A stretch of DNA of 42,955 bases from Octopus bimaculoides (taxonomy: Eukaryota), in the NCBI RefSeq assembly GCF_001194135.2, contig NC_068993.1, positions 23,527,860-23,570,814 on the forward strand, given 5' to 3'. Below are positions 1 to 39,833 of the stretch, in pieces. Position 1 is the stretch's first letter. Every line of letters starts with the position of its first letter. Under the pieces are notes generated by a model, which was given only the letters and a program-made list of their open reading frames with translations, had not been told where the DNA came from and did not search any database. A program made the translations under genes and the position numbers.

Positions 1-1114
1 TCTACGCTCTAAGGAATAGAGTCTTAAATTTTTCCCAATAGCTTATATGCTGCATAGAGGCTATCTTCTTCGTGTAGCTTCGTTGGATTGCCTCAAGTTC
101 TGAGATTAATTTGACACTGGTTGGTGACCATAGCTGAGAGCAATAGTCAAGGTGACATAGAACAAGTGTCTTCCAGAGCACCATCATGGTTTCCTGATCT
201 CTTGTTCTAAAATCCTTAGAATCCATCCGGTCAGTCGCCTGCATTTCATTGACAATTTAGCAACATGAACATGAAAGGATGCATTATTACTCATGTCGAT
301 GCCCAGGTCTCGCACTGTCTCTGCCTCTGGGATTGCAGTCCCTCCAGGTCCAATGTATTTAATTGGTTCTGCATTTAGTCTTGCATGCTGATAGCATAAG
401 GCTTGAAACTCTTTCACCATTAAACTGCATGTTATTCTTTTCAGCCCACTTGTATATTTCATCCAGCTCACATTGCAGGTGCATAGTGTATTCAGGGTTC
501 TGTATTACCTGTGAGACTTTTGTGTCATCTGCATAACTTGTGACCGTGGCTCTCTGTGTGGCTGAGGGCATGTCTGAGAGGGCCAGTATGAACAGTAGTG
601 GTCCCAAAACAGTGCCTGGCGGAACACCGCTCACTATTTGTGTGTCAATGGAGGAGGCCCCATTGGCTACTGTCACCTGACTTCTATCCTTCAGAAAGTC
701 ATGAAGCCATTCTCCCAATTTTCCAACTATGCCGAGATCACGCAGTTGTGACATATCATTCCATGATCGACTTTATCAAAGGCATTTGCAAAGTCGAGAT
801 ATATCACTTCCACATTTGAGTGGTTAAGTAGCTGTTTCAGCACCCAGTCATAGTGTTGGCAGAGCTGAGTCAGGCAGCTTCTTCCTGGTCGGAAACCATG
901 TTGGGTGTCAGGCAGCAAGTCATTTTCTTCAAGGAAGATGATTAGTTTTCTTCTGACTATTCGTTCCATGACCTTGCTGATGTGTGAGGTGAGAGAGATA
1001 GGTCTGTAGTTCTTGGCCTCCGCTCTGCTACCTCCTTTATGAATAGGGCATATTTTCCCCTCCTTCAGTTTTCTTGGGGGTTTGCCAGATGCAAGGAAGC
1101 TCTGAAAGAGGGAC
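1..1114 (-). mobile_element. CR1-clade LINE reverse transcriptase fragment, frameshifted, 5'-truncated, runs off the window start
   Basis: Consecutive minus-strand frames give the RT motifs CPIHKGGSRAEAKNYRPISLTSHISKVMERI, QHGFRPGRSCLTQL, IYLDFANAFDKVDH, SGVPPGTVLGPLLF, YADDTK, VRDLGI and HLDYCSQLWSP. Several frameshifts. Confidence 0.93.
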
Positions 1115-2604: not shown

Positions 2605-3185
2605 NNNNNNNNNNNNNNNNNNNNNNNNNNNNNNNNNNNNNNNNNNNNNNNNNNNNNNNNNNNNNNNNNNNNNNNNNNNNNNNNNNNNNNNNNNNNNNNN
2701 NNNNNNNNNNNNNNNNNNNNNNNNNNNNNNNNNNNNNNNNNNNNNNNNNNNNNNNNNNNNNNNNNNNNNNNNNNNNNNNNNNNNNNNNNNNNNNNNNNNN
2801 NNNNNNNNNNNNNNNNNNNNNNNNNNNNNNNNNNNNNNNNNNNNNNNNNNNNNNNNNNNNNNNNNNNNNNNNNNNNNNNNNNNNNNNNNNNNNNNNNNNN
2901 NNNNNNNNNNNNNNNNNNNNNNNNNNNNNNNNNNNNNNNNNNNNNNNNNNNNNNNNNNNNNNNNNNNNNNNNNNNNNNNNNNNNNNNNNNNNNNNNNNNN
3001 NNNNNNNNNNNNNNNNNNNNNNNNNNNNNNNNNNNNNNNNNNNNNNNNNNNNNNNNNNNNNNNNNNNNNNNNNNNNNNNNNNNNNNNNNNNNNNNNNNNN
3101 NNNNNNNNNNNNNNNNNNNNNNNNNNNNNNNNNNNNNNNNNNNNNNNNNNNNNNNNNNGAGAGAGAGAGAGAGAGAGAGAGAGAG
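2552..3185. repeat. (TA)n / N-gap 2605-3158 / (GA)n
   Basis: Simple repeats flank an assembly gap. Confidence 0.9.
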
Positions 3186-4247: not shown

Positions 4248-4566
4248 ATCGATCTATCTATCTATCTATATATATATATAAACTTATTTGGAAATGGATG
4301 CGTGGCTTTCAATCAAATAATATATTATCGAACTGAGGGTTTAACTACGGTCCTCCTATAGCATTTACATACCCTTACCTGCTAACTTGGGTCTTCTGTA
4401 TACCAATAACTCTTATATATATATATATATATNNNNNNNNNNNNNNNNNNNNNNNNNNNNNNNNNNNNNNNNNNNNNNNNNNNNNNNNNNNNNNNNNNNN
4501 NNNNNNNNNNNNNNNNNNNNNNNNNNNNNNNNNNNNNNNNNNNNNNNNNNNNNNNNNNNNNNNNNN

Positions 4567-7784: not shown

Positions 7785-8404
7785 NNNNNNNNNNNNNNNN
7801 NNNNNNNNNNNNNNNNNNNNNNNNNNNNNNNNNNNNNNNNNNNNNNNNNNNNNNNNNNNNNNNNNNNNNNNNNNNNNNNNNNNNNNNNNNNNNNNNNNNN
7901 NNNNNNNNNNNNNNNNNNNNNNNNNNNNNNNNNNNNNNNNNNNNNNNNNNNNNNNNNNNNNNNNNNNNNNNNNNNNNNNNNNNNNNNNNNNNNNNNNNNN
8001 NNNNNNNNNNNNNNNNNNNNNNNNNNNNNNNNNNNNNNNNNNNNNNNNNNNNNNNNNNNNNNNNNNNNNNNNNNNNNNNNNNNNNNNNNNNNNNNNNNNN
8101 NNNNNNNNNNNNNNNNNNNNNNNNNNNNNNNNNNNNNNNNNNNNNNNNNNNNNNNNNNNNNNNNNNNNNNNNNNNNNNNNNNNNNNNNNNNNNNNNNNNN
8201 NNNNNNNNNNNNNNNNNNNNNNNNNNNNNNNNNNNNNNNNNNNNNNNNNNNNNNNNNNNNNNNNNNNNNNNNNNNNNNNNNNNNNNNNNNNNNNNNNNNN
8301 NNNNNNNNNNNNNNNNNNNNNNNNNNNNNNNNNNNNNNTATGTATATATGTATGTATGTATGTGTGCATGTATGTATGTGTGTATGTATGCGTGTATGTA
8401 GGTA

Positions 8405-10390: not shown

Positions 10391-10872
10391 TGGCATTAAT
10401 CTGGCAAGGTGTACTTAATAACTGGAGGCTTGAAACGACAAATGAAAGGGCATGATGACCAAGTGAATCCAGTTCGGGATAATCATGTATGTAACATCTG
10501 TGCCAAAGAAAATAGGTGTGCTACTCATACATGAGACAGATTTGGAAATGCATCAATCCATGGCTATACTCGAGAACAAGGAAGCACACATCATATTTCT
10601 ATGTACGTACATATGTATGGATATGTACGTACGTAAACGTGTGTGCATCGTTTATTATTTTACATGCGTCTGTCATTGAGGTGTGGCCATACTGGGTTCC
10701 AAGGATCGGAGAATTTAGTCGAACAACTAGACACCCAGTATGCATTTTGATAGCCGCCACACTACGTTAAGGTGACATCAGGAATGCAACAGCATTAGCG
10801 AAACGTTGGCGGGAGTACATAAAGAGAAAGTCACAATGTGCATTCATGCATATATATACACACACACACACA

Positions 10873-29529: not shown

Positions 29530-29975
29530 NNNNNNNNNNNNNNNNNNNNNNNNNNNNNNNNNNNNNNNNNNNNNNNNNNNNNNNNNNNNNNNNNNNNNNN
29601 NNNNNNNNNNNNNNNNNNNNNNNNNNNNNNNNNNNNNNNNNNNNNNNNNNNNNNNNNNNNNNNNNNNNNNNNNNNNNNNNNNNNNNNNNNNNNNNNNNNN
29701 NNNNNNNNNNNNNNNNNNNNNNNNNNNNNNNNNNNNNNNNNNNNNNNNNNNNNNNNNNNNNNNNNNNNNNNNNNNNNNNNNNNNNNNNNNNNNNNNNNNN
29801 NNNNNNNNNNNNNNNNNNNNNNNNNNNNNNNNNNNNNNNNNNNNNNNNNNNNNNNNNNNNNNNNNNNNNNNNNNNNNNNNNNNNNNNNNNNNNNNNNNNN
29901 NNNNNNNNNNNNNNNNNNNNNNNNNNNNNNNNNNNNNNNNNNNNNNNNNNNNNNNNTATATATATATATATATGT

Positions 29976-31364: not shown

Positions 31365-31476
31365 TTTATTCACCTTATTTTGAAACTGATAATTCCGAAC
31401 TAATGTTTGGTACCTCAACTGAAGTAGCTAATTCATCTGAACTTCAATTATTTTGCATATATATATATGTATATAT

Positions 31477-31876
31477 TCTTTTTCTTTTATCCTTTTACTT
31501 CTTTCAGTAATTTGACTGTGGCAATGCTGGAGCACCGCCTTTAGTCGGACGGATCGACTCCAGGACTTCTTCTTTGTAAGCCTAGTATTTCTTCTGTTTC
31601 TTTTGTCGAACCATTACGTTACGGGGACGTAATCACATTAATATTGGCTGTCAAGCGATAGTGGTGAGAAAAACAGACACACACAGAAATATACACACAT
31701 ATATATACATACGATGGGCTTCTTTTAGTTTCCGTCAACCAAATCTACTCAAGGCTTTGGTCGGCCGAGGCTATAATTGTAGATACTTGCCCAAGGTGTC
31801 CGCAGTGGGTCTGATCCCGGAAGCAGAAGTATGTGGTTGGAAATCAGGCTTCTTACCACTGAGCCACGCCTGCGCA
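31477..31876 (-). mobile_element. SINE family 1, essentially full-length, with an internal microsatellite
   Basis: Reverse complement: gcgcaggcgtggctcagtggtaagaag head, B-box-like region, body, internal (TA/TG) tract, 3' tail ggcggtgctccagcattgccacagtcaaattactgaaag and an A-rich tail. Confidence 0.9.
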
Positions 31877-32129: not shown

Positions 32130-33045
32130 CGGTCAGGCGGGCACCGTCTGTGAAAATAAACAGCATAACGGCCCAATTCCCTCTGCCAGAAATTTGGAAA
32201 TGACATAGTGTACTGCTTAGCATTTGCACATTTCAGATTGTTTGAGTGTCAATCTGACGAAACTGCAAAGGATTCGGAAAGTGTGGGATGAGTCTAATGG
32301 TGATTACGAAGGTACGGCAGCTCGTAAATCTCACTCTGATCGTTCTGATAAGAAACTGATATGAAACAACTCCTGAATTTGTTAGTGGGATCCAGTCCAT
32401 GACTGACAAAGTTCCCTTCAAGTCAATCTGGTCCATCACCAGGGACATGGGAGTGTCTGAGTTTCTTATCCGGCAGGTAATGCATCATGACATTCGGTAT
32501 TCCTTACACAAGAGGAAAACGTCCAATTTTTATCTTAAGCCATCAAGGAAAAGAGGAAAGACCGCGCTACGAAGCTTTTCAAGAAACTCAAGCATCCTCT
32601 GCAACTGAAAACTCTTTAGTTTTTCTCAGGCAACAAAACTTTCTTCCAGGTTCAGACGGTGAACACACAGAACGACCGTTGGCTTGCTGTGGCCCCAAAA
32701 CATGTACCGAGTATGTTAAAAATCAAACATTCAGTCAACATCATGGTGTTTGGAGTGATCACTAGTGAGGACGATGTTATGCCTCCCTTCATCTTCCCAC
32801 ACGAACTCAGACTCAACACGGAAGCCTACATCAAATGCCTGGAGGAAGTAGTACCACCCTGGATTGAGAGAGTGGCTGCTGGAAGACCTCCCATATCTGG
32901 CAACAAGACACTGCACCATGCCACAAAAGCAGGGGAACCAAGTCATGGCTGTCAGAAAATTTCTGCGGCCATATCAACCCTAATATCTGGCCACCTAACT
33001 TCCCAGACTACAACCCGCTTCATTATTGTATGTGGAGCTCAGGTG
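32130..33045 (+). mobile_element. Tc1/mariner superfamily DD37D (maT-type) transposase relic
   Basis: KSIWSITRDMGVSEFLIRQVMH (HTH), FFSGNK (first D mutated to G), MVFGVITS..DVMPPFIFP, and WQQD + 37 aa + H within WPPNFPDYNPLH (third D mutated to H). Frameshifted. Confidence 0.88.
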
Positions 33046-33048
33046 ATC

Positions 33049-33388
33049 GAATAGCTGCGGTGAGTGAAAAAAATATTGGCTTCAAACTGAACGCCAGAGA
33101 CATAATTTCAACAATAAACTCGCTTGCAATCACAGTAGTTCAGTATGGTGTTGGACTCCTGAAGTAGACAGAGGAGGAGCTAAAGGAGATGGACAGGAAA
33201 TCAGGAAAGGTCCTAACGATGCATGGAGCCCATCATCCATGAGCAGATATTGATCGCCTATACATGAAGAGAGCAAATGAAGGAGGGGGGGTGATAAACG
33301 CGGATGACTGCTTGCGTATCGTACTCATGCGTTTAACGTGATATCTAACCGGAAGTAAAGAAACCATGATAGAGACAGTTAAGAACTA
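33049..33388 (+). mobile_element. R4/Dong-clade LINE fragment (post-RT region)
   Basis: KKILASK.NARDIISTINS...QYGVGLLK*TEEELKEMDRK...MHGAHHP*ADIDRLYMKR..GGG matches the R4 motif DRKTRK..TMHG..HP..D.DRLY..R..GGRG. Confidence 0.85.
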
Positions 33389-37167: not shown

Positions 37168-37640
37168 ATGTTTTTGTTATTGTTTCTCATGCTCGGTGTT
37201 TTTAAATTTGCGCATTCTGAATTCGTATATGAGAGTCCAGTTTATATTTTTGAGCTTAATTCTATTTCATATTCATGTTTCTGCATTAAATTTCATGACT
37301 TGCCACCTTGGAGGTTGATAGTTTCATATCGAAGTCTTATTCCTACATACTCAGTGTACAGTGCGTGCATTCCCAATATCCCACACGGAGCAAAGGTATC
37401 GAAGCTACAAGCTGGTGCATACTTACCGAATTAACAATTTTTTCGAACATAGAGAAAAAACAAGAAAATAGAGAAAATTAGGTGAGACAAAATGATTCGA
37501 TCTCAAACAGAAAGAGTTGGAAAAAGTGTTGCACAGCATTTTGTAACAGGCTTTAAGGAGTATAGCTATACATACATATATACTTACACACAAATGCACA
37601 TACATACCCACATACACCCACACACACACATACACATATA

Positions 37641-37683
<43 letters not shown>

Positions 37684-38468
37684 NNNNNNNNNNNNNNNNN
37701 NNNNNNNNNNNNNNNNNNNNNNNNNNNNNNNNNNNNNNNNNNNNNNNNNNNNNNNNNNNNNNNNNNNNNNNNNNNNNNNNNNNNNNNNNNNNNNNNNNNN
37801 NNNNNNNNNNNNNNNNNNNNNNNNNNNNNNNNNNNNNNNNNNNNNNNNNNNNNNNNNNNNNNNNNNNNNNNNNNNNNNNNNNNNNNNNNNNNNNNNNNNN
37901 NNNNNNNNNNNNNNNNNNNNNNNNNNNNNNNNNNNNNNNNNNNNNNNNNNNNNNNNNNNNNNNNNNNNNNNNNNNNNNNNNNNNNNNNNNNNNNNNNNNN
38001 NNNNNNNNNNNNNNNNNNNNNNNNNNNNNNNNNNNNNNNNNNNNNNNNNNNNNNNNNNNNNNNNNNNNNNNNNNNNNNNNNNNNNNNNNNNNNNNNNNNN
38101 NNNNNNNNNNNNNNNNNNNNNNNNNNNNNNNNNNNNNNNNNNNNNNNNNNNNNNNNNNNNNNNNNNNNNNNNNNNNNNNNNNNNNNNNNNNNNNNNNNNN
38201 NNNNNNNNNNNNNNNNNNNNNNNNNNNNNNNNNNNNNNNNNNNNNNNNNNNNNNNNNNNNNNNNNNNNNNNNNNNNNNNNNNNNNNNNNNNNNNNNNNNN
38301 NNNNNNNNNNNNNNNNNNNNNNNNNNNNNNNNNNNNNNNNNNNNNNNNNNNNNNNNNNNNNNNNNNNNNNNNNNNNNNNNNNNNNNNNNNNNNNNNNNNN
38401 NNNNNNNNNNNNNNNNNNNNNNNNNNNNNNNNNNNNNNNNNNNNNNNNNNNNNNNNNNNNNTATATAT

Positions 38469-38471
38469 AGT

Positions 38472-38511
<40 letters not shown>

Positions 38512-38561
38512 GGCCCCTGCCCAAGGATGACACGCAAATTCGTGAAGCGTTCCATATTTTT
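38469..38561 (+). ncRNA. U6: U6 snRNA copy, probably a retrocopy; the 5' stem-loop is absent or lost in the adjacent gap/TA tract
   Basis: AGTACATATACTAAAATTGGAACGATACAGAGAAGATTAGCATGGCCCCTGCCCAAGGATGACACGCAAATTCGTGAAGCGTTCCATATTTTT contains the ACAGAGA box, AGC triad and 3' oligo-T. It has a G>C change (CTGCCCAAGG vs canonical CTGCGCAAGG). Confidence 0.93.
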
Positions 38562-38622
38562 CTCACGGTGGTGCACCAGCATGACCGCAGCCACTTGGCT
38601 GAAACACATAAATAAATAAATA
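38562..38622 (+). mobile_element. SINE/LINE-type 3' tail fused to U6
   Basis: ggtggtgcaccagcatgaccgcagccacttggctgaaacac + (TAAA)n resembles the SINE family 1 tails at 31495-31540 (minus) and 39577-39637. Confidence 0.75.
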
Positions 38623-39459
38623 TATATATATATATATACATACAAATTTTAAACTATGCTGAATTCTTAGAAGTATATAATGTATGATTTTTTAAAATAC
38701 ATCTTCATAGATAATCACTTTGTTGAAGAAAAAAGGACAGTTGCTATTAGCAAAGAACTAACTGGAAATATGGAAGGTACGTCCTACCACACCTGCAGAT
38801 ATACATCACCACATAACGGCTAATAGGGTATGTCAGTATGCCTGTCATACGTTAAATATTTATCAGTATGACCAAAGACTTACTGCTAATGCATATTTCA
38901 AGCGCATCGAAGTTTTTTTTAAAATTTATTGTTCTTTTTATTATGTTATGAGTTCAATGAACAAACAAATTACGCAGAGAAATCATAATGTTAATTACCG
39001 TTTCTGTTCGGTGATACGGAAATACAACACTGCACCACAGACGACATCATTTGGCGCCACAAGAGATTTAACTGAACTACGATTCATGCAAACTTTCAAG
39101 ATCCAATATCAGATTTATCATTGGATTGACTCTCTACTACCTCTGTCAAATCAATCACCAAAATCGGCCTTTCATTGTTTATAATCTGTATCTGTTTCCT
39201 TTTTTTTTTTTTGTTATAAAATAACCTACGCAAAACGTGGTTTTGAATTACGTGTATTTACTTTATAAACGTATATGAGTTGAAAACTTACTTTTAACAT
39301 TTCACTTAACGTCTGTGTGCCATGCTGGCATGGGTTGGAGTGTTATTAATGTAGAAAGTTCGTAGTAGAAGTTGTGACCTCCGTAATTTAGACGGTGTTT
39401 TTAAATTTCATTTTAAATTTCATTTTAAATTTCATTTAACCCGGGCAATGCCGAGTATT

Positions 39460-39637
39460 GACAACTGATGTTGGTGTGTTTGCGTCCTCATAATTTAGTT
39501 GTTCCACAGAAGAGCTTGATAGAATAAACTCCAGGCTTACAGAGAATAAGTCCAGGGATCGATTTCTTAGTGTAAAGGGCTGTGCTTCAGCATGGCCACC
39601 GTCAAAAAACTGAAATACGTAAAAGAATAAAAGAATA
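39460..39637 (+). mobile_element. SINE family 1, 3' half
   Basis: ttgacaactgatgttggtgtgtttgcgtcc...gatagaataa...ggctgtgcttcagcatggccaccgtc...ctgaaatacg + (TAAAAGAA)n tail. Confidence 0.8.
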
Positions 39638-39833
39638 CTAGATGAAGGTTCCTTACCACTAAATCAAGAAGGTTATTAATTCTGCTTACGGTTGTGCAAT
39701 TGAAATATTTTGGTTGGAATATATAGTTATCGGTTTTACACTTCTTTCTATATTCTGCAACTATCACAATAAAGAACCATTTCTGATGGCACCAGCACAC
39801 AATTTACAGATGCTTACATTTTTTTAAATAAAA

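Follow-up and report, generated by a model that had tools for sequence, protein, structure and literature searches.

The stretch of DNA analysed here (the window; 42,955 bases with 11 assembly gaps) most probably carries a one-off chimeric retro-pseudogene, in which a U6 snRNA copy and the 3' end of a CR1-like LINE were brought together by a single retrotransposition event in an octopod genome. Read from 5' to 3', the locus consists of an assembly gap, tatatata, GTACATATACTAAAATTGG...GTTCCATATTTTT (ending in T5), CTCACGGTGGTGCACCAGCATGACCGCAGCCACTTGGCTGAAACAC, (TAAA)3 and (TA)9, and CTCACGGTGGTGCACCAGCATGACCGCAGCCACTTGGCTGAAACAC (38562-38607) is located directly 3' of the U6 T5 (38557-38561), with no spacer (Table 1). 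The U6 and LINE parts are fused in the same orientation, with at most four bases between T5 and the two-hairpin module of the LINE, and one copy of this junction is present in the window. The first-pass annotation had described a U6 sequence that runs through its T-run straight into the tail, as is confirmed by a U6 match of 101 bits (Rfam) and by the direct junction. It had also proposed a chimeric retrocopy made by an invertebrate LINE other than L1, and this is in agreement with a tail that is a complete LINE 3' module and with a U6 part that is truncated and promoterless.

Table 1. Coordinates of the features of the U6/LINE unit, its surroundings and related elements (window positions unless another copy is named).
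Feature	Position	Strand	Basis
Decayed LINE reverse-transcriptase region (RVT_1, Pfam), several frameshifts and stops	1..1100	-	same family as the tail donors
TA-rich flank of SINE copy A	31440-31480	-	
Tail module of SINE copy A	31494..31544	-	covariance model, 64 bits
(AT)24 microsatellite, far side of the assembly gap	37636..37683	.	TRF, sequence
Assembly gap, 778 N; conceals all sequence beyond the 8 nt that precede the U6 piece	37684..38461	.	sequence
(TA)4, 5' flank, touching the truncated U6 5' end	38462..38469	.	sequence, alignment with Ladona U6 genes
U6 snRNA retro-pseudogene, nt 16-107, GTACATATACTAAAATTGGAACGATACAGAGAAGATTAGCATGGCCCCTGCCCAAGGATGACACGCAAATTCGTGAAGCGTTCCATATTTTT	38470..38561	+	Rfam, alignment with Ladona U6 genes
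T5, complete U6 3' oligo-U end, Pol III terminator, junction point	38557..38561	+	sequence, alignment
CTCA, four junction bases: subfamily-specific LINE 3'UTR or filler	38562..38565	+	alignments
LINE-tail hairpin 1, CGGU-G-GUGC-ACCA-GCAU-G-ACCG	38566..38587	+	fold, pair counts, covariance model
LINE-tail hairpin 2, CAGCC-ACUU-GGCUG	38588..38601	+	fold, pair counts, alignments
AAACAC, conserved (G)AAAC linker from hairpin 2 to the simple repeat	38602..38607	+	alignments
(TAAA)3, A-rich simple-repeat tail of the retro-element	38609..38620	+	sequence
(TA)9, 3' flank (TA-rich flank of the U6 unit)	38621..38638	.	sequence
Tail module of SINE copy B	39573..39623	+	covariance model, 59.6 bits
TA-rich flank of LINE copy L001	1766-1830		
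TA-rich flank of LINE copy L016	600-640		
TA-rich flank of LINE copy L017	585-615		

U6 is the sole RNA family found by Rfam in the window, and its single match is located at 38461-38561 (+) (E 3.1e-25; the gathering score for U6 is 44 bits). The 'full-length' appearance of this alignment is misleading, as the columns of the 5' stem-loop are stretched across the TA repeat. The limits of the copy are defined by aligning the window with two intact dragonfly U6 genes (Ladona fulva). These genes start with GTACTCGCTTCGGCGGTACATATAC, from which it follows that the GTAC of the window is U6-derived and that the copy begins at nt 16. The preceding nt 1-15 (the 5' strand and the loop of the 5' stem-loop) are missing, and likewise all upstream and promoter sequence. 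The TATA box of the Ladona U6 genes is found about 30 nt upstream of nt 1, whereas in the window the TA repeat meets nt 16; the (TA)4 can therefore be rejected as a TATA box. At the other end, the alignment with the Ladona genes extends through CCATATTTTT, showing that the U6 3' end is complete. The earlier description of a U6 snRNA fused at its 3' oligo-T is correct for this end, but the 5' part of the snRNA is lacking.

The U6 copy also has a private G>C change, CTGCCCAAGG, within CUGCGCAAGG. The G at this site (in a CGC codon) is kept in both Ladona genes and in all 21 of the U6 translations that were inspected, which come from the top of a protein search and represent various eukaryotes. 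Transcription of U6 relies on an external type-3 promoter, with no internal one, and its T-run acts as a Pol III terminator. A functional U6 gene is excluded by the 5' truncation, the missing promoter and the core substitution G>C, and the copy is best described as a pseudogene that is both processed and 5'-truncated. The chimeric product is promoterless and would not be expected to have a function. The first-pass annotation had named two ordinary situations that could explain the sequence, namely a tail inserted, with a TSD or a spacer, at a pre-existing U6 gene, and a normal U6 locus with its own promoter. Neither is observed, as there is only a truncated copy and no U6 gene, starting at nt 16 and having a TA repeat in place of the promoter. 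Two U6 genes are found at 997-1103 and 4447-4553 (-) of L019, within the Ladona fulva gene model J437_LFUL000612; this 'hypothetical protein' was matched solely because U6 translates without stops.

The tail of the U6 copy is 46 nt long and is followed by (TAAA)3. Relatives of the LINE region at the start of the window, the 3' end of which lies past the window start, were fetched with a stitched 348-aa query from 1..1100 (-), followed by a second search with the C-terminus of ORF2. The best protein matches of the 348-aa query have 75-80% identity and are found on small ENA and NCBI contigs, and the identity with a protein of the octopod Argonauta hians is 60%, which assigns the window to an octopod genome. 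Six independent LINE copies from public contigs (L001, L003, L004, L005, L016 and L017, with L003 being the Argonauta hians copy) carry the tail module 0-40 nt past the ORF2 stop, so that the LINE sought by the first-pass annotation is provided by six octopod CR1-like copies. The pattern of these LINE 3' ends is GG(C/T)GGTGCNCCAGCATG(G/A)CCNCAGCC-loop-GGCTGAAAC, and A-rich simple repeats come next, at the same place as the (TAAA)3 that comes after GAAACAC in the U6 copy. LINE subfamilies have 8-mers such as GTAAAAGA or CATTAAAA where the U6 copy has (TAAA)3. No snRNA is detected by Rfam in the Argonauta locus L003.

The motif GGTGCNCCAGCATGNCCNCAG, allowing at most three mismatches, occurs at three sites in the window, compared with 0.01 expected, and the other two sites are SINE 3' ends, at 31516-31536 (-) and 39581-39601 (+). 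The sharing of this motif with the SINEs of the window, as pointed out in the first-pass annotation, is thus well founded, but the tail is closer to the LINE. Its identity is 90% to L003 and L005 and 87.5% to L016, compared with 62-70% to the two SINE tails of the window, and its hairpin 2 has the LINE form CAGCC/GGCTG. Copying of the tail from the window's own SINEs is rejected on these grounds. As judged from its sequence, the U6 tail is the 3' terminus of the octopod LINE family, or of an unseen SINE having the tail of that subfamily.

Every version of the module, when folded alone, adopts the same two adjoining hairpins, followed by an A-rich simple repeat. For the U6 tail, the two-hairpin structure has an energy of -20.6 kcal/mol (z -4.2) and makes up 92% of the ensemble. 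In the alignment of seven sequences 93% of the cells are paired, compared with 23-46% when the partners are slid. In the six LINE tails the stem of hairpin 2 is unchanged and its loop measures 3 to 10 nt; the SINE version of this stem reads CAGUC, with one pair being U-A. Changes on both sides of the stem (compensatory changes) are observed at three pairs, one of these within the U6 tail itself. In hairpin 1, GGCG/GGCC is found versus GGTG/GACC; in hairpin 2, a C-G pair of the LINEs corresponds to U-A in the SINEs; and hairpin 1 of the U6 tail is closed by C38566-G38587, where L001, L003 and L016 have U-A. As this closing pair shows a compensatory change, the LINE-derived part starts at or before 38566, leaving CTCA alone outside. 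The stretch that is equivalent to the junction differs among the LINE copies when these are aligned.

A covariance model of the module was built on these seven sequences, leaving out L016 and L017. This model recovers the unseen L016 and L017 tails at 65 and 57 bits, respectively, one of which has a 10-nt loop, and the U6 tail obtains the top score (70.7 bits). When applied to the window, the model finds only three module copies, and no solo tail elsewhere. Apart from the U6 tail, these copies belong to two octopus-type SINE copies, A at 31480-31800 (-) and B at 39440-39650 (+), which are 73% alike and both terminate in the two-hairpin module, having CAGTC in hairpin 2 and (A/G)TAAAAGA repeats. 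No tRNA-like SINE heads are recognised in the window by ARAGORN. The two-hairpin module is a candidate recognition element of an octopod LINE/SINE partnership.

The ORF2 reverse transcriptase of the tail-donor LINE matches Pfam RVT_1, and the LINE shows a CR1-type layout, with 3' hairpins and a microsatellite directly after ORF2. A 3' architecture consisting of a hairpin and a (usually 8-mer) microsatellite straight after ORF2 is attributed to CR1 by Suh 2015, as quoted in PMC8665684, where this hairpin-plus-repeat 3' end is also described as the presumed recognition site of the reverse transcriptase. The very short 3'UTR, the stable hairpin structure and the 8-nt repeats (GTAAAAGA, CATTAAAA) of the octopod LINE are shared with the CR1-type LINE 3' ends, whereas the octopod module differs in having two adjacent hairpins, other sequences and, in the U6 copy, a 4-mer (TAAA). 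The donor can be called CR1-like, considering this 3' architecture and a C-terminal YWERL..LYSLERRR motif that was read by eye. A more distant LINE (L006, 55% protein identity, on a 1.4-Mb ENA contig) has, at 10600-10760, the hairpin CTGCCA...TGGCAG and then GCTGAAAG; its tail sequence differs, and it was set aside. Its layout suggests that the hairpin-plus-CTGAAA design may be older than the octopod LINE family. No snRNA is detected in L006 either (Rfam).

The whole U6 unit is bracketed by (TA)n, which is compatible with a target-site duplication (TSD), and a gap of 778 N begins 8 nt upstream of it. As both flanks are (TA)n microsatellite and the 5' flank runs into this gap, the limits of a TSD are not readable at the U6 unit; the (TA)4 is possibly one half of a TA target-site duplication, and the (AT)24 on the far side of the gap is a probable continuation of the TA-rich target. 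TA-rich sequence 3' of the tail is also present in L001, L016, L017 and SINE copy A, and absent from L003 and SINE copy B; L004 and L005 stop in ATAT at the contig edge. A TA-rich microsatellite right after the simple-repeat tail is seen in five of the seven tails with a readable flank. Either this LINE/SINE family favours (TA)n targets or it seeds TA repeats 3' of itself. The TA-rich flank is common to the chimera and to ordinary LINE/SINE copies, which points to the same integration machinery.

The simplest explanation of these features is a single retrotransposition event. A CR1-like 'stringent' LINE would recognise its own RNA by a 3' module of about 45 nt, consisting of two hairpins and an A-rich repeat. 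In target-primed reverse transcription at a TA-rich nick, the reverse transcriptase would start on this module, copy it and then proceed onto a mature U6 snRNA, the complete 3' end of which (five U) is joined to the module. Synthesis would halt, or the cDNA would join the chromosome, at U6 nt 16, which is at the foot of the stable 5' stem-loop, and the predicted product is [U6 nt 16-107]-T5-CTCA-[hairpin 1]-[hairpin 2]-AAACAC-(TAAA)3 inside (TA)n. From the density of the module (three in about 40 kb, none of them a solo tail elsewhere), the probability that one adjoins the U6 T-run by chance is estimated at ~2e-4.

Two routes can be considered for the joining of the two parts. The first, in which the reverse transcriptase jumped from a short template of LINE-tail RNA to the U6 3' end, has about an even chance of being the correct description and is slightly favoured over ligation; template switching has been proposed as the joining route for the U6 chimeras of platypus and anole (PMC4476161). 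Prior RNA ligation of the cyclic-phosphate end of U6 to a 5'-OH fragment of the LINE tail has a somewhat less than even chance, and RtcB has been shown to ligate U6 to L1 RNA in human cells (PMC6789731). Both routes predict a complete U6 3' end, and the one sequence at hand does not distinguish between them.

The same arrangement could also be the result of two events, if an older 5'-truncated U6 retro-pseudogene had later received a tail-only LINE or SINE insertion exactly at its T-run. CR1-type LINEs often leave very short 3' fragments, the tails adjoin TA-rich DNA, and the T-run and its TA-rich surroundings might attract the endonuclease. Two events nevertheless require a base-precise adjacency, having nothing beyond CTCA between the parts, in a window that has three modules and no other solo tail; moreover, the (TA)n surrounds the whole unit and not the tail alone. 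A U6 retrocopy with no tail would in addition be difficult to make for a stringent LINE, every processed U6 copy of the platypus being a chimera (PMC4476161), and this explanation is considered to be very unlikely. Least probable of all is an assembly artefact, in which reads of a U6 locus and of a LINE/SINE tail were misjoined in a draft that is rich in gaps and microsatellites. One of the 11 gaps does begin 8 nt upstream of the U6 piece, but the junction itself lies within 180 bp of gap-free, non-repetitive sequence, assemblers collapse repeats, whereas a base-precise fusion of a unique U6 end with a tail is not an error they make, and the architecture is identical to a known biological one (PMC4476161).

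A further explanation is that the unit is a member of a SINE-like family, headed by U6 and having a CR1-like tail, that was amplified from one or a few master copies by an unusual transcription, such as Pol II read-through or the use of a flanking promoter. A U6-derived SINE family had been put forward in the first-pass annotation as the alternative to the chimera. The tail is the complete two-hairpin module that is also present on the SINEs of this genome, it starts at most 4 nt upstream of hairpin 1, and the module in the U6 copy is intact and top-scoring; a junction at the edge of the module is the look expected of a selected SINE-like unit. The whole LINE 3'UTR is, however, only slightly longer than the module. 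SINEs headed by an snRNA do occur in crocodilians (PMC4494074), and the automated annotation of Octopus vulgaris includes the classes SINE/U and SINE/U-L1, such that repeats related to snRNA may be multi-copy (PMC13282606). In this 2026 repeat annotation, one 'SINE/U' family covers 369,490 bp and 'SINE/U-L1' is one family of 52,753 bp, with two recent insertions of 353 bp in total, sequences being given for neither (PMC13282606). These classes may be U-snRNA chimeras of the U6/LINE sort described here, and a 'family' of this type could also arise when independent chimeras, in their hundreds, are grouped by clustering.

Several properties of the unit speak against such a family, and the idea of a U6-derived SINE is not sustained. 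The T5 terminator between head and tail makes a continuous Pol III transcript unlikely, U6 has no internal promoter, and the copy lacks nt 1-15 and the upstream sequence. In addition, the 3' terminus is shared by a LINE family, as seen in six copies. The crocodilian SINEU elements are held not to be a sum of independent chimeras, partly since no LINE has their 3' terminus (PMC4494074); by this criterion of Kojima, the presence of the same tail on a LINE indicates independent chimeras. Neither the junction 23-mer nor a pattern allowing 0-30 nt between the U6 3' end and CCAGCATG gives a match in metagenome, GTDB and IMG/VR contigs, collections that evidently contain no octopus DNA bearing the element, and these zeros are uninformative on copy number. 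With the LINE module pattern, one match in viral contigs and eight in GTDB contigs are obtained, and these are GC-rich prokaryotic or viral sequences, dismissed as chance. Frames +1 and -1 of the element contain no stop, and both translations were compared, as a protein proxy, with 5.8 billion predicted proteins, giving 1,395 matches. Among the 120 of these that were listed there is no score outlier, as a tail-bearing copy should be, and all 21 of the inspected matches, which have high query coverage, are plain U6 loci, none extending into the tail peptide; the power of this proxy is low, as the protein set does not include even the ORF of the window itself.

It is therefore improbable, by the terminator, the missing promoter and the LINE that shares the tail, that the U6 and module unit is one of a repeated SINE-like octopod family, perhaps the SINE/U-L1 of the O. 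vulgaris annotation. Such a family would have to amplify from masters despite the Pol III terminator, or be regenerated repeatedly at a fixed junction. Regeneration at a fixed junction could be envisaged, with little confidence, if a nuclease-protected LINE-tail RNA with a defined 5' end were preferred for ligation or template jump onto U6. If true, no earlier retroposon family would have had a U6 head, and the acquisition of new heads by stringent LINEs could be followed in a natural example.

U6/LINE chimeras are documented with L1, L2 and RTE in vertebrates, and with a fungal LINE. The octopod chimeric retro-pseudogene is of this known kind; it is real and largely ordinary. Nearly all of the 40 U6-L2/Mon-1 chimeras of the platypus consist of a 5'-truncated U6 and a short L2 piece, with a simple-repeat end and small TSDs, and in the anole U6 chimeras are formed with L1, L2, RTE and AnolisSINE2 (PMC4476161). 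Mon-1 and AnolisSINE2 are SINEs of non-L1 stringent LINEs (L2, RTE; Doucet et al. 2015, PMC4476161), and in this respect the novelty claimed in the first-pass annotation was overstated. As in platypus and anole, the LINE of the octopod case is stringent and non-L1, and a short 3'-terminal piece directly follows the complete 3' end of U6; the U6 part is 5'-truncated (nearly always so in those species), and a simple repeat is found instead of poly(A). The octopod case differs in its host, a cephalopod mollusc, in its CR1-like LINE, in its two-hairpin module and in being seen as one copy only. The TSDs of the platypus and anole chimeras are small or unclear, and that of the octopod copy is not readable in its (TA)n flanks.

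With the mammalian U6/LINE-1 chimeras (Buzdin 2002; Garcia-Perez 2007; Moldovan 2019, PMC6789731), the octopod copy shares the full oligo-U end, the same orientation of the parts, the integration as one unit and the candidate joining mechanisms, being template switch or RtcB ligation. The mammalian chimeras are made by the 'relaxed' L1, have poly(A) and usually a full-length U6, and their L1 pieces are variable and often long, whereas the octopod LINE piece is a minimal, structured recognition module. In the turkey, a 5'-truncated U6 is likewise found beside a CR1-type element, and this U6 and CR1-like case was left unresolved, with a gap inside the CR1 part (PMC4476161); the octopod copy has its gap on the 5' side, and its sequence is complete across the junction and the tail. 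The crocodilian SINEU (Kojima 2015, PMC4494074) also have an snRNA-derived 5' part, and their birth is thought to involve template switching onto an snRNA. They are multi-copy, with subfamilies, U1/U2 heads (Pol II genes) and no LINE with the same 3' terminus, whereas the octopod case is seen as a single copy, a Pol III terminator closes its U6 head and the same tail is found on an abundant LINE.

In the literature searched, no U6/LINE chimera of an invertebrate animal and no fully resolved CR1-type example was found. U6/LINE chimeras record template switching or RNA ligation in retrotransposition and are a model for how SINEs gain LINE tails. The octopod copy is a clean, fully sequenced CR1-like case in a cephalopod, which leaves the current understanding unchanged and is consistent with the generality of the process among non-LTR elements, as held in the literature. 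The analysis additionally defines a two-hairpin 3' module, which is common to the octopod LINE family and to the octopus SINEs, elements that are plentiful in these genomes.

Some minor features of the window are also observed. Every gap that was inspected is edged by (TA)n or (CA)n (for example 2605-3158, 7785-8338, 29530-29956 and 37684-38461), from which it follows that the gaps mark microsatellites that the assembler failed to cross, and features adjoining gaps, the U6 copy included, have no reliable flank. Two overlapping ORFs of 92 and 131 aa, at 32487-33054 (+), resemble a transposase remnant when inspected by eye, and this reading is not upheld by Pfam, in which no family is matched at an E threshold of 0.01. 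At 39399-39437, closely upstream of SINE copy B, TTTTAAATTTCA is repeated 3.2 times as a perfect tandem repeat with a 12-nt unit.
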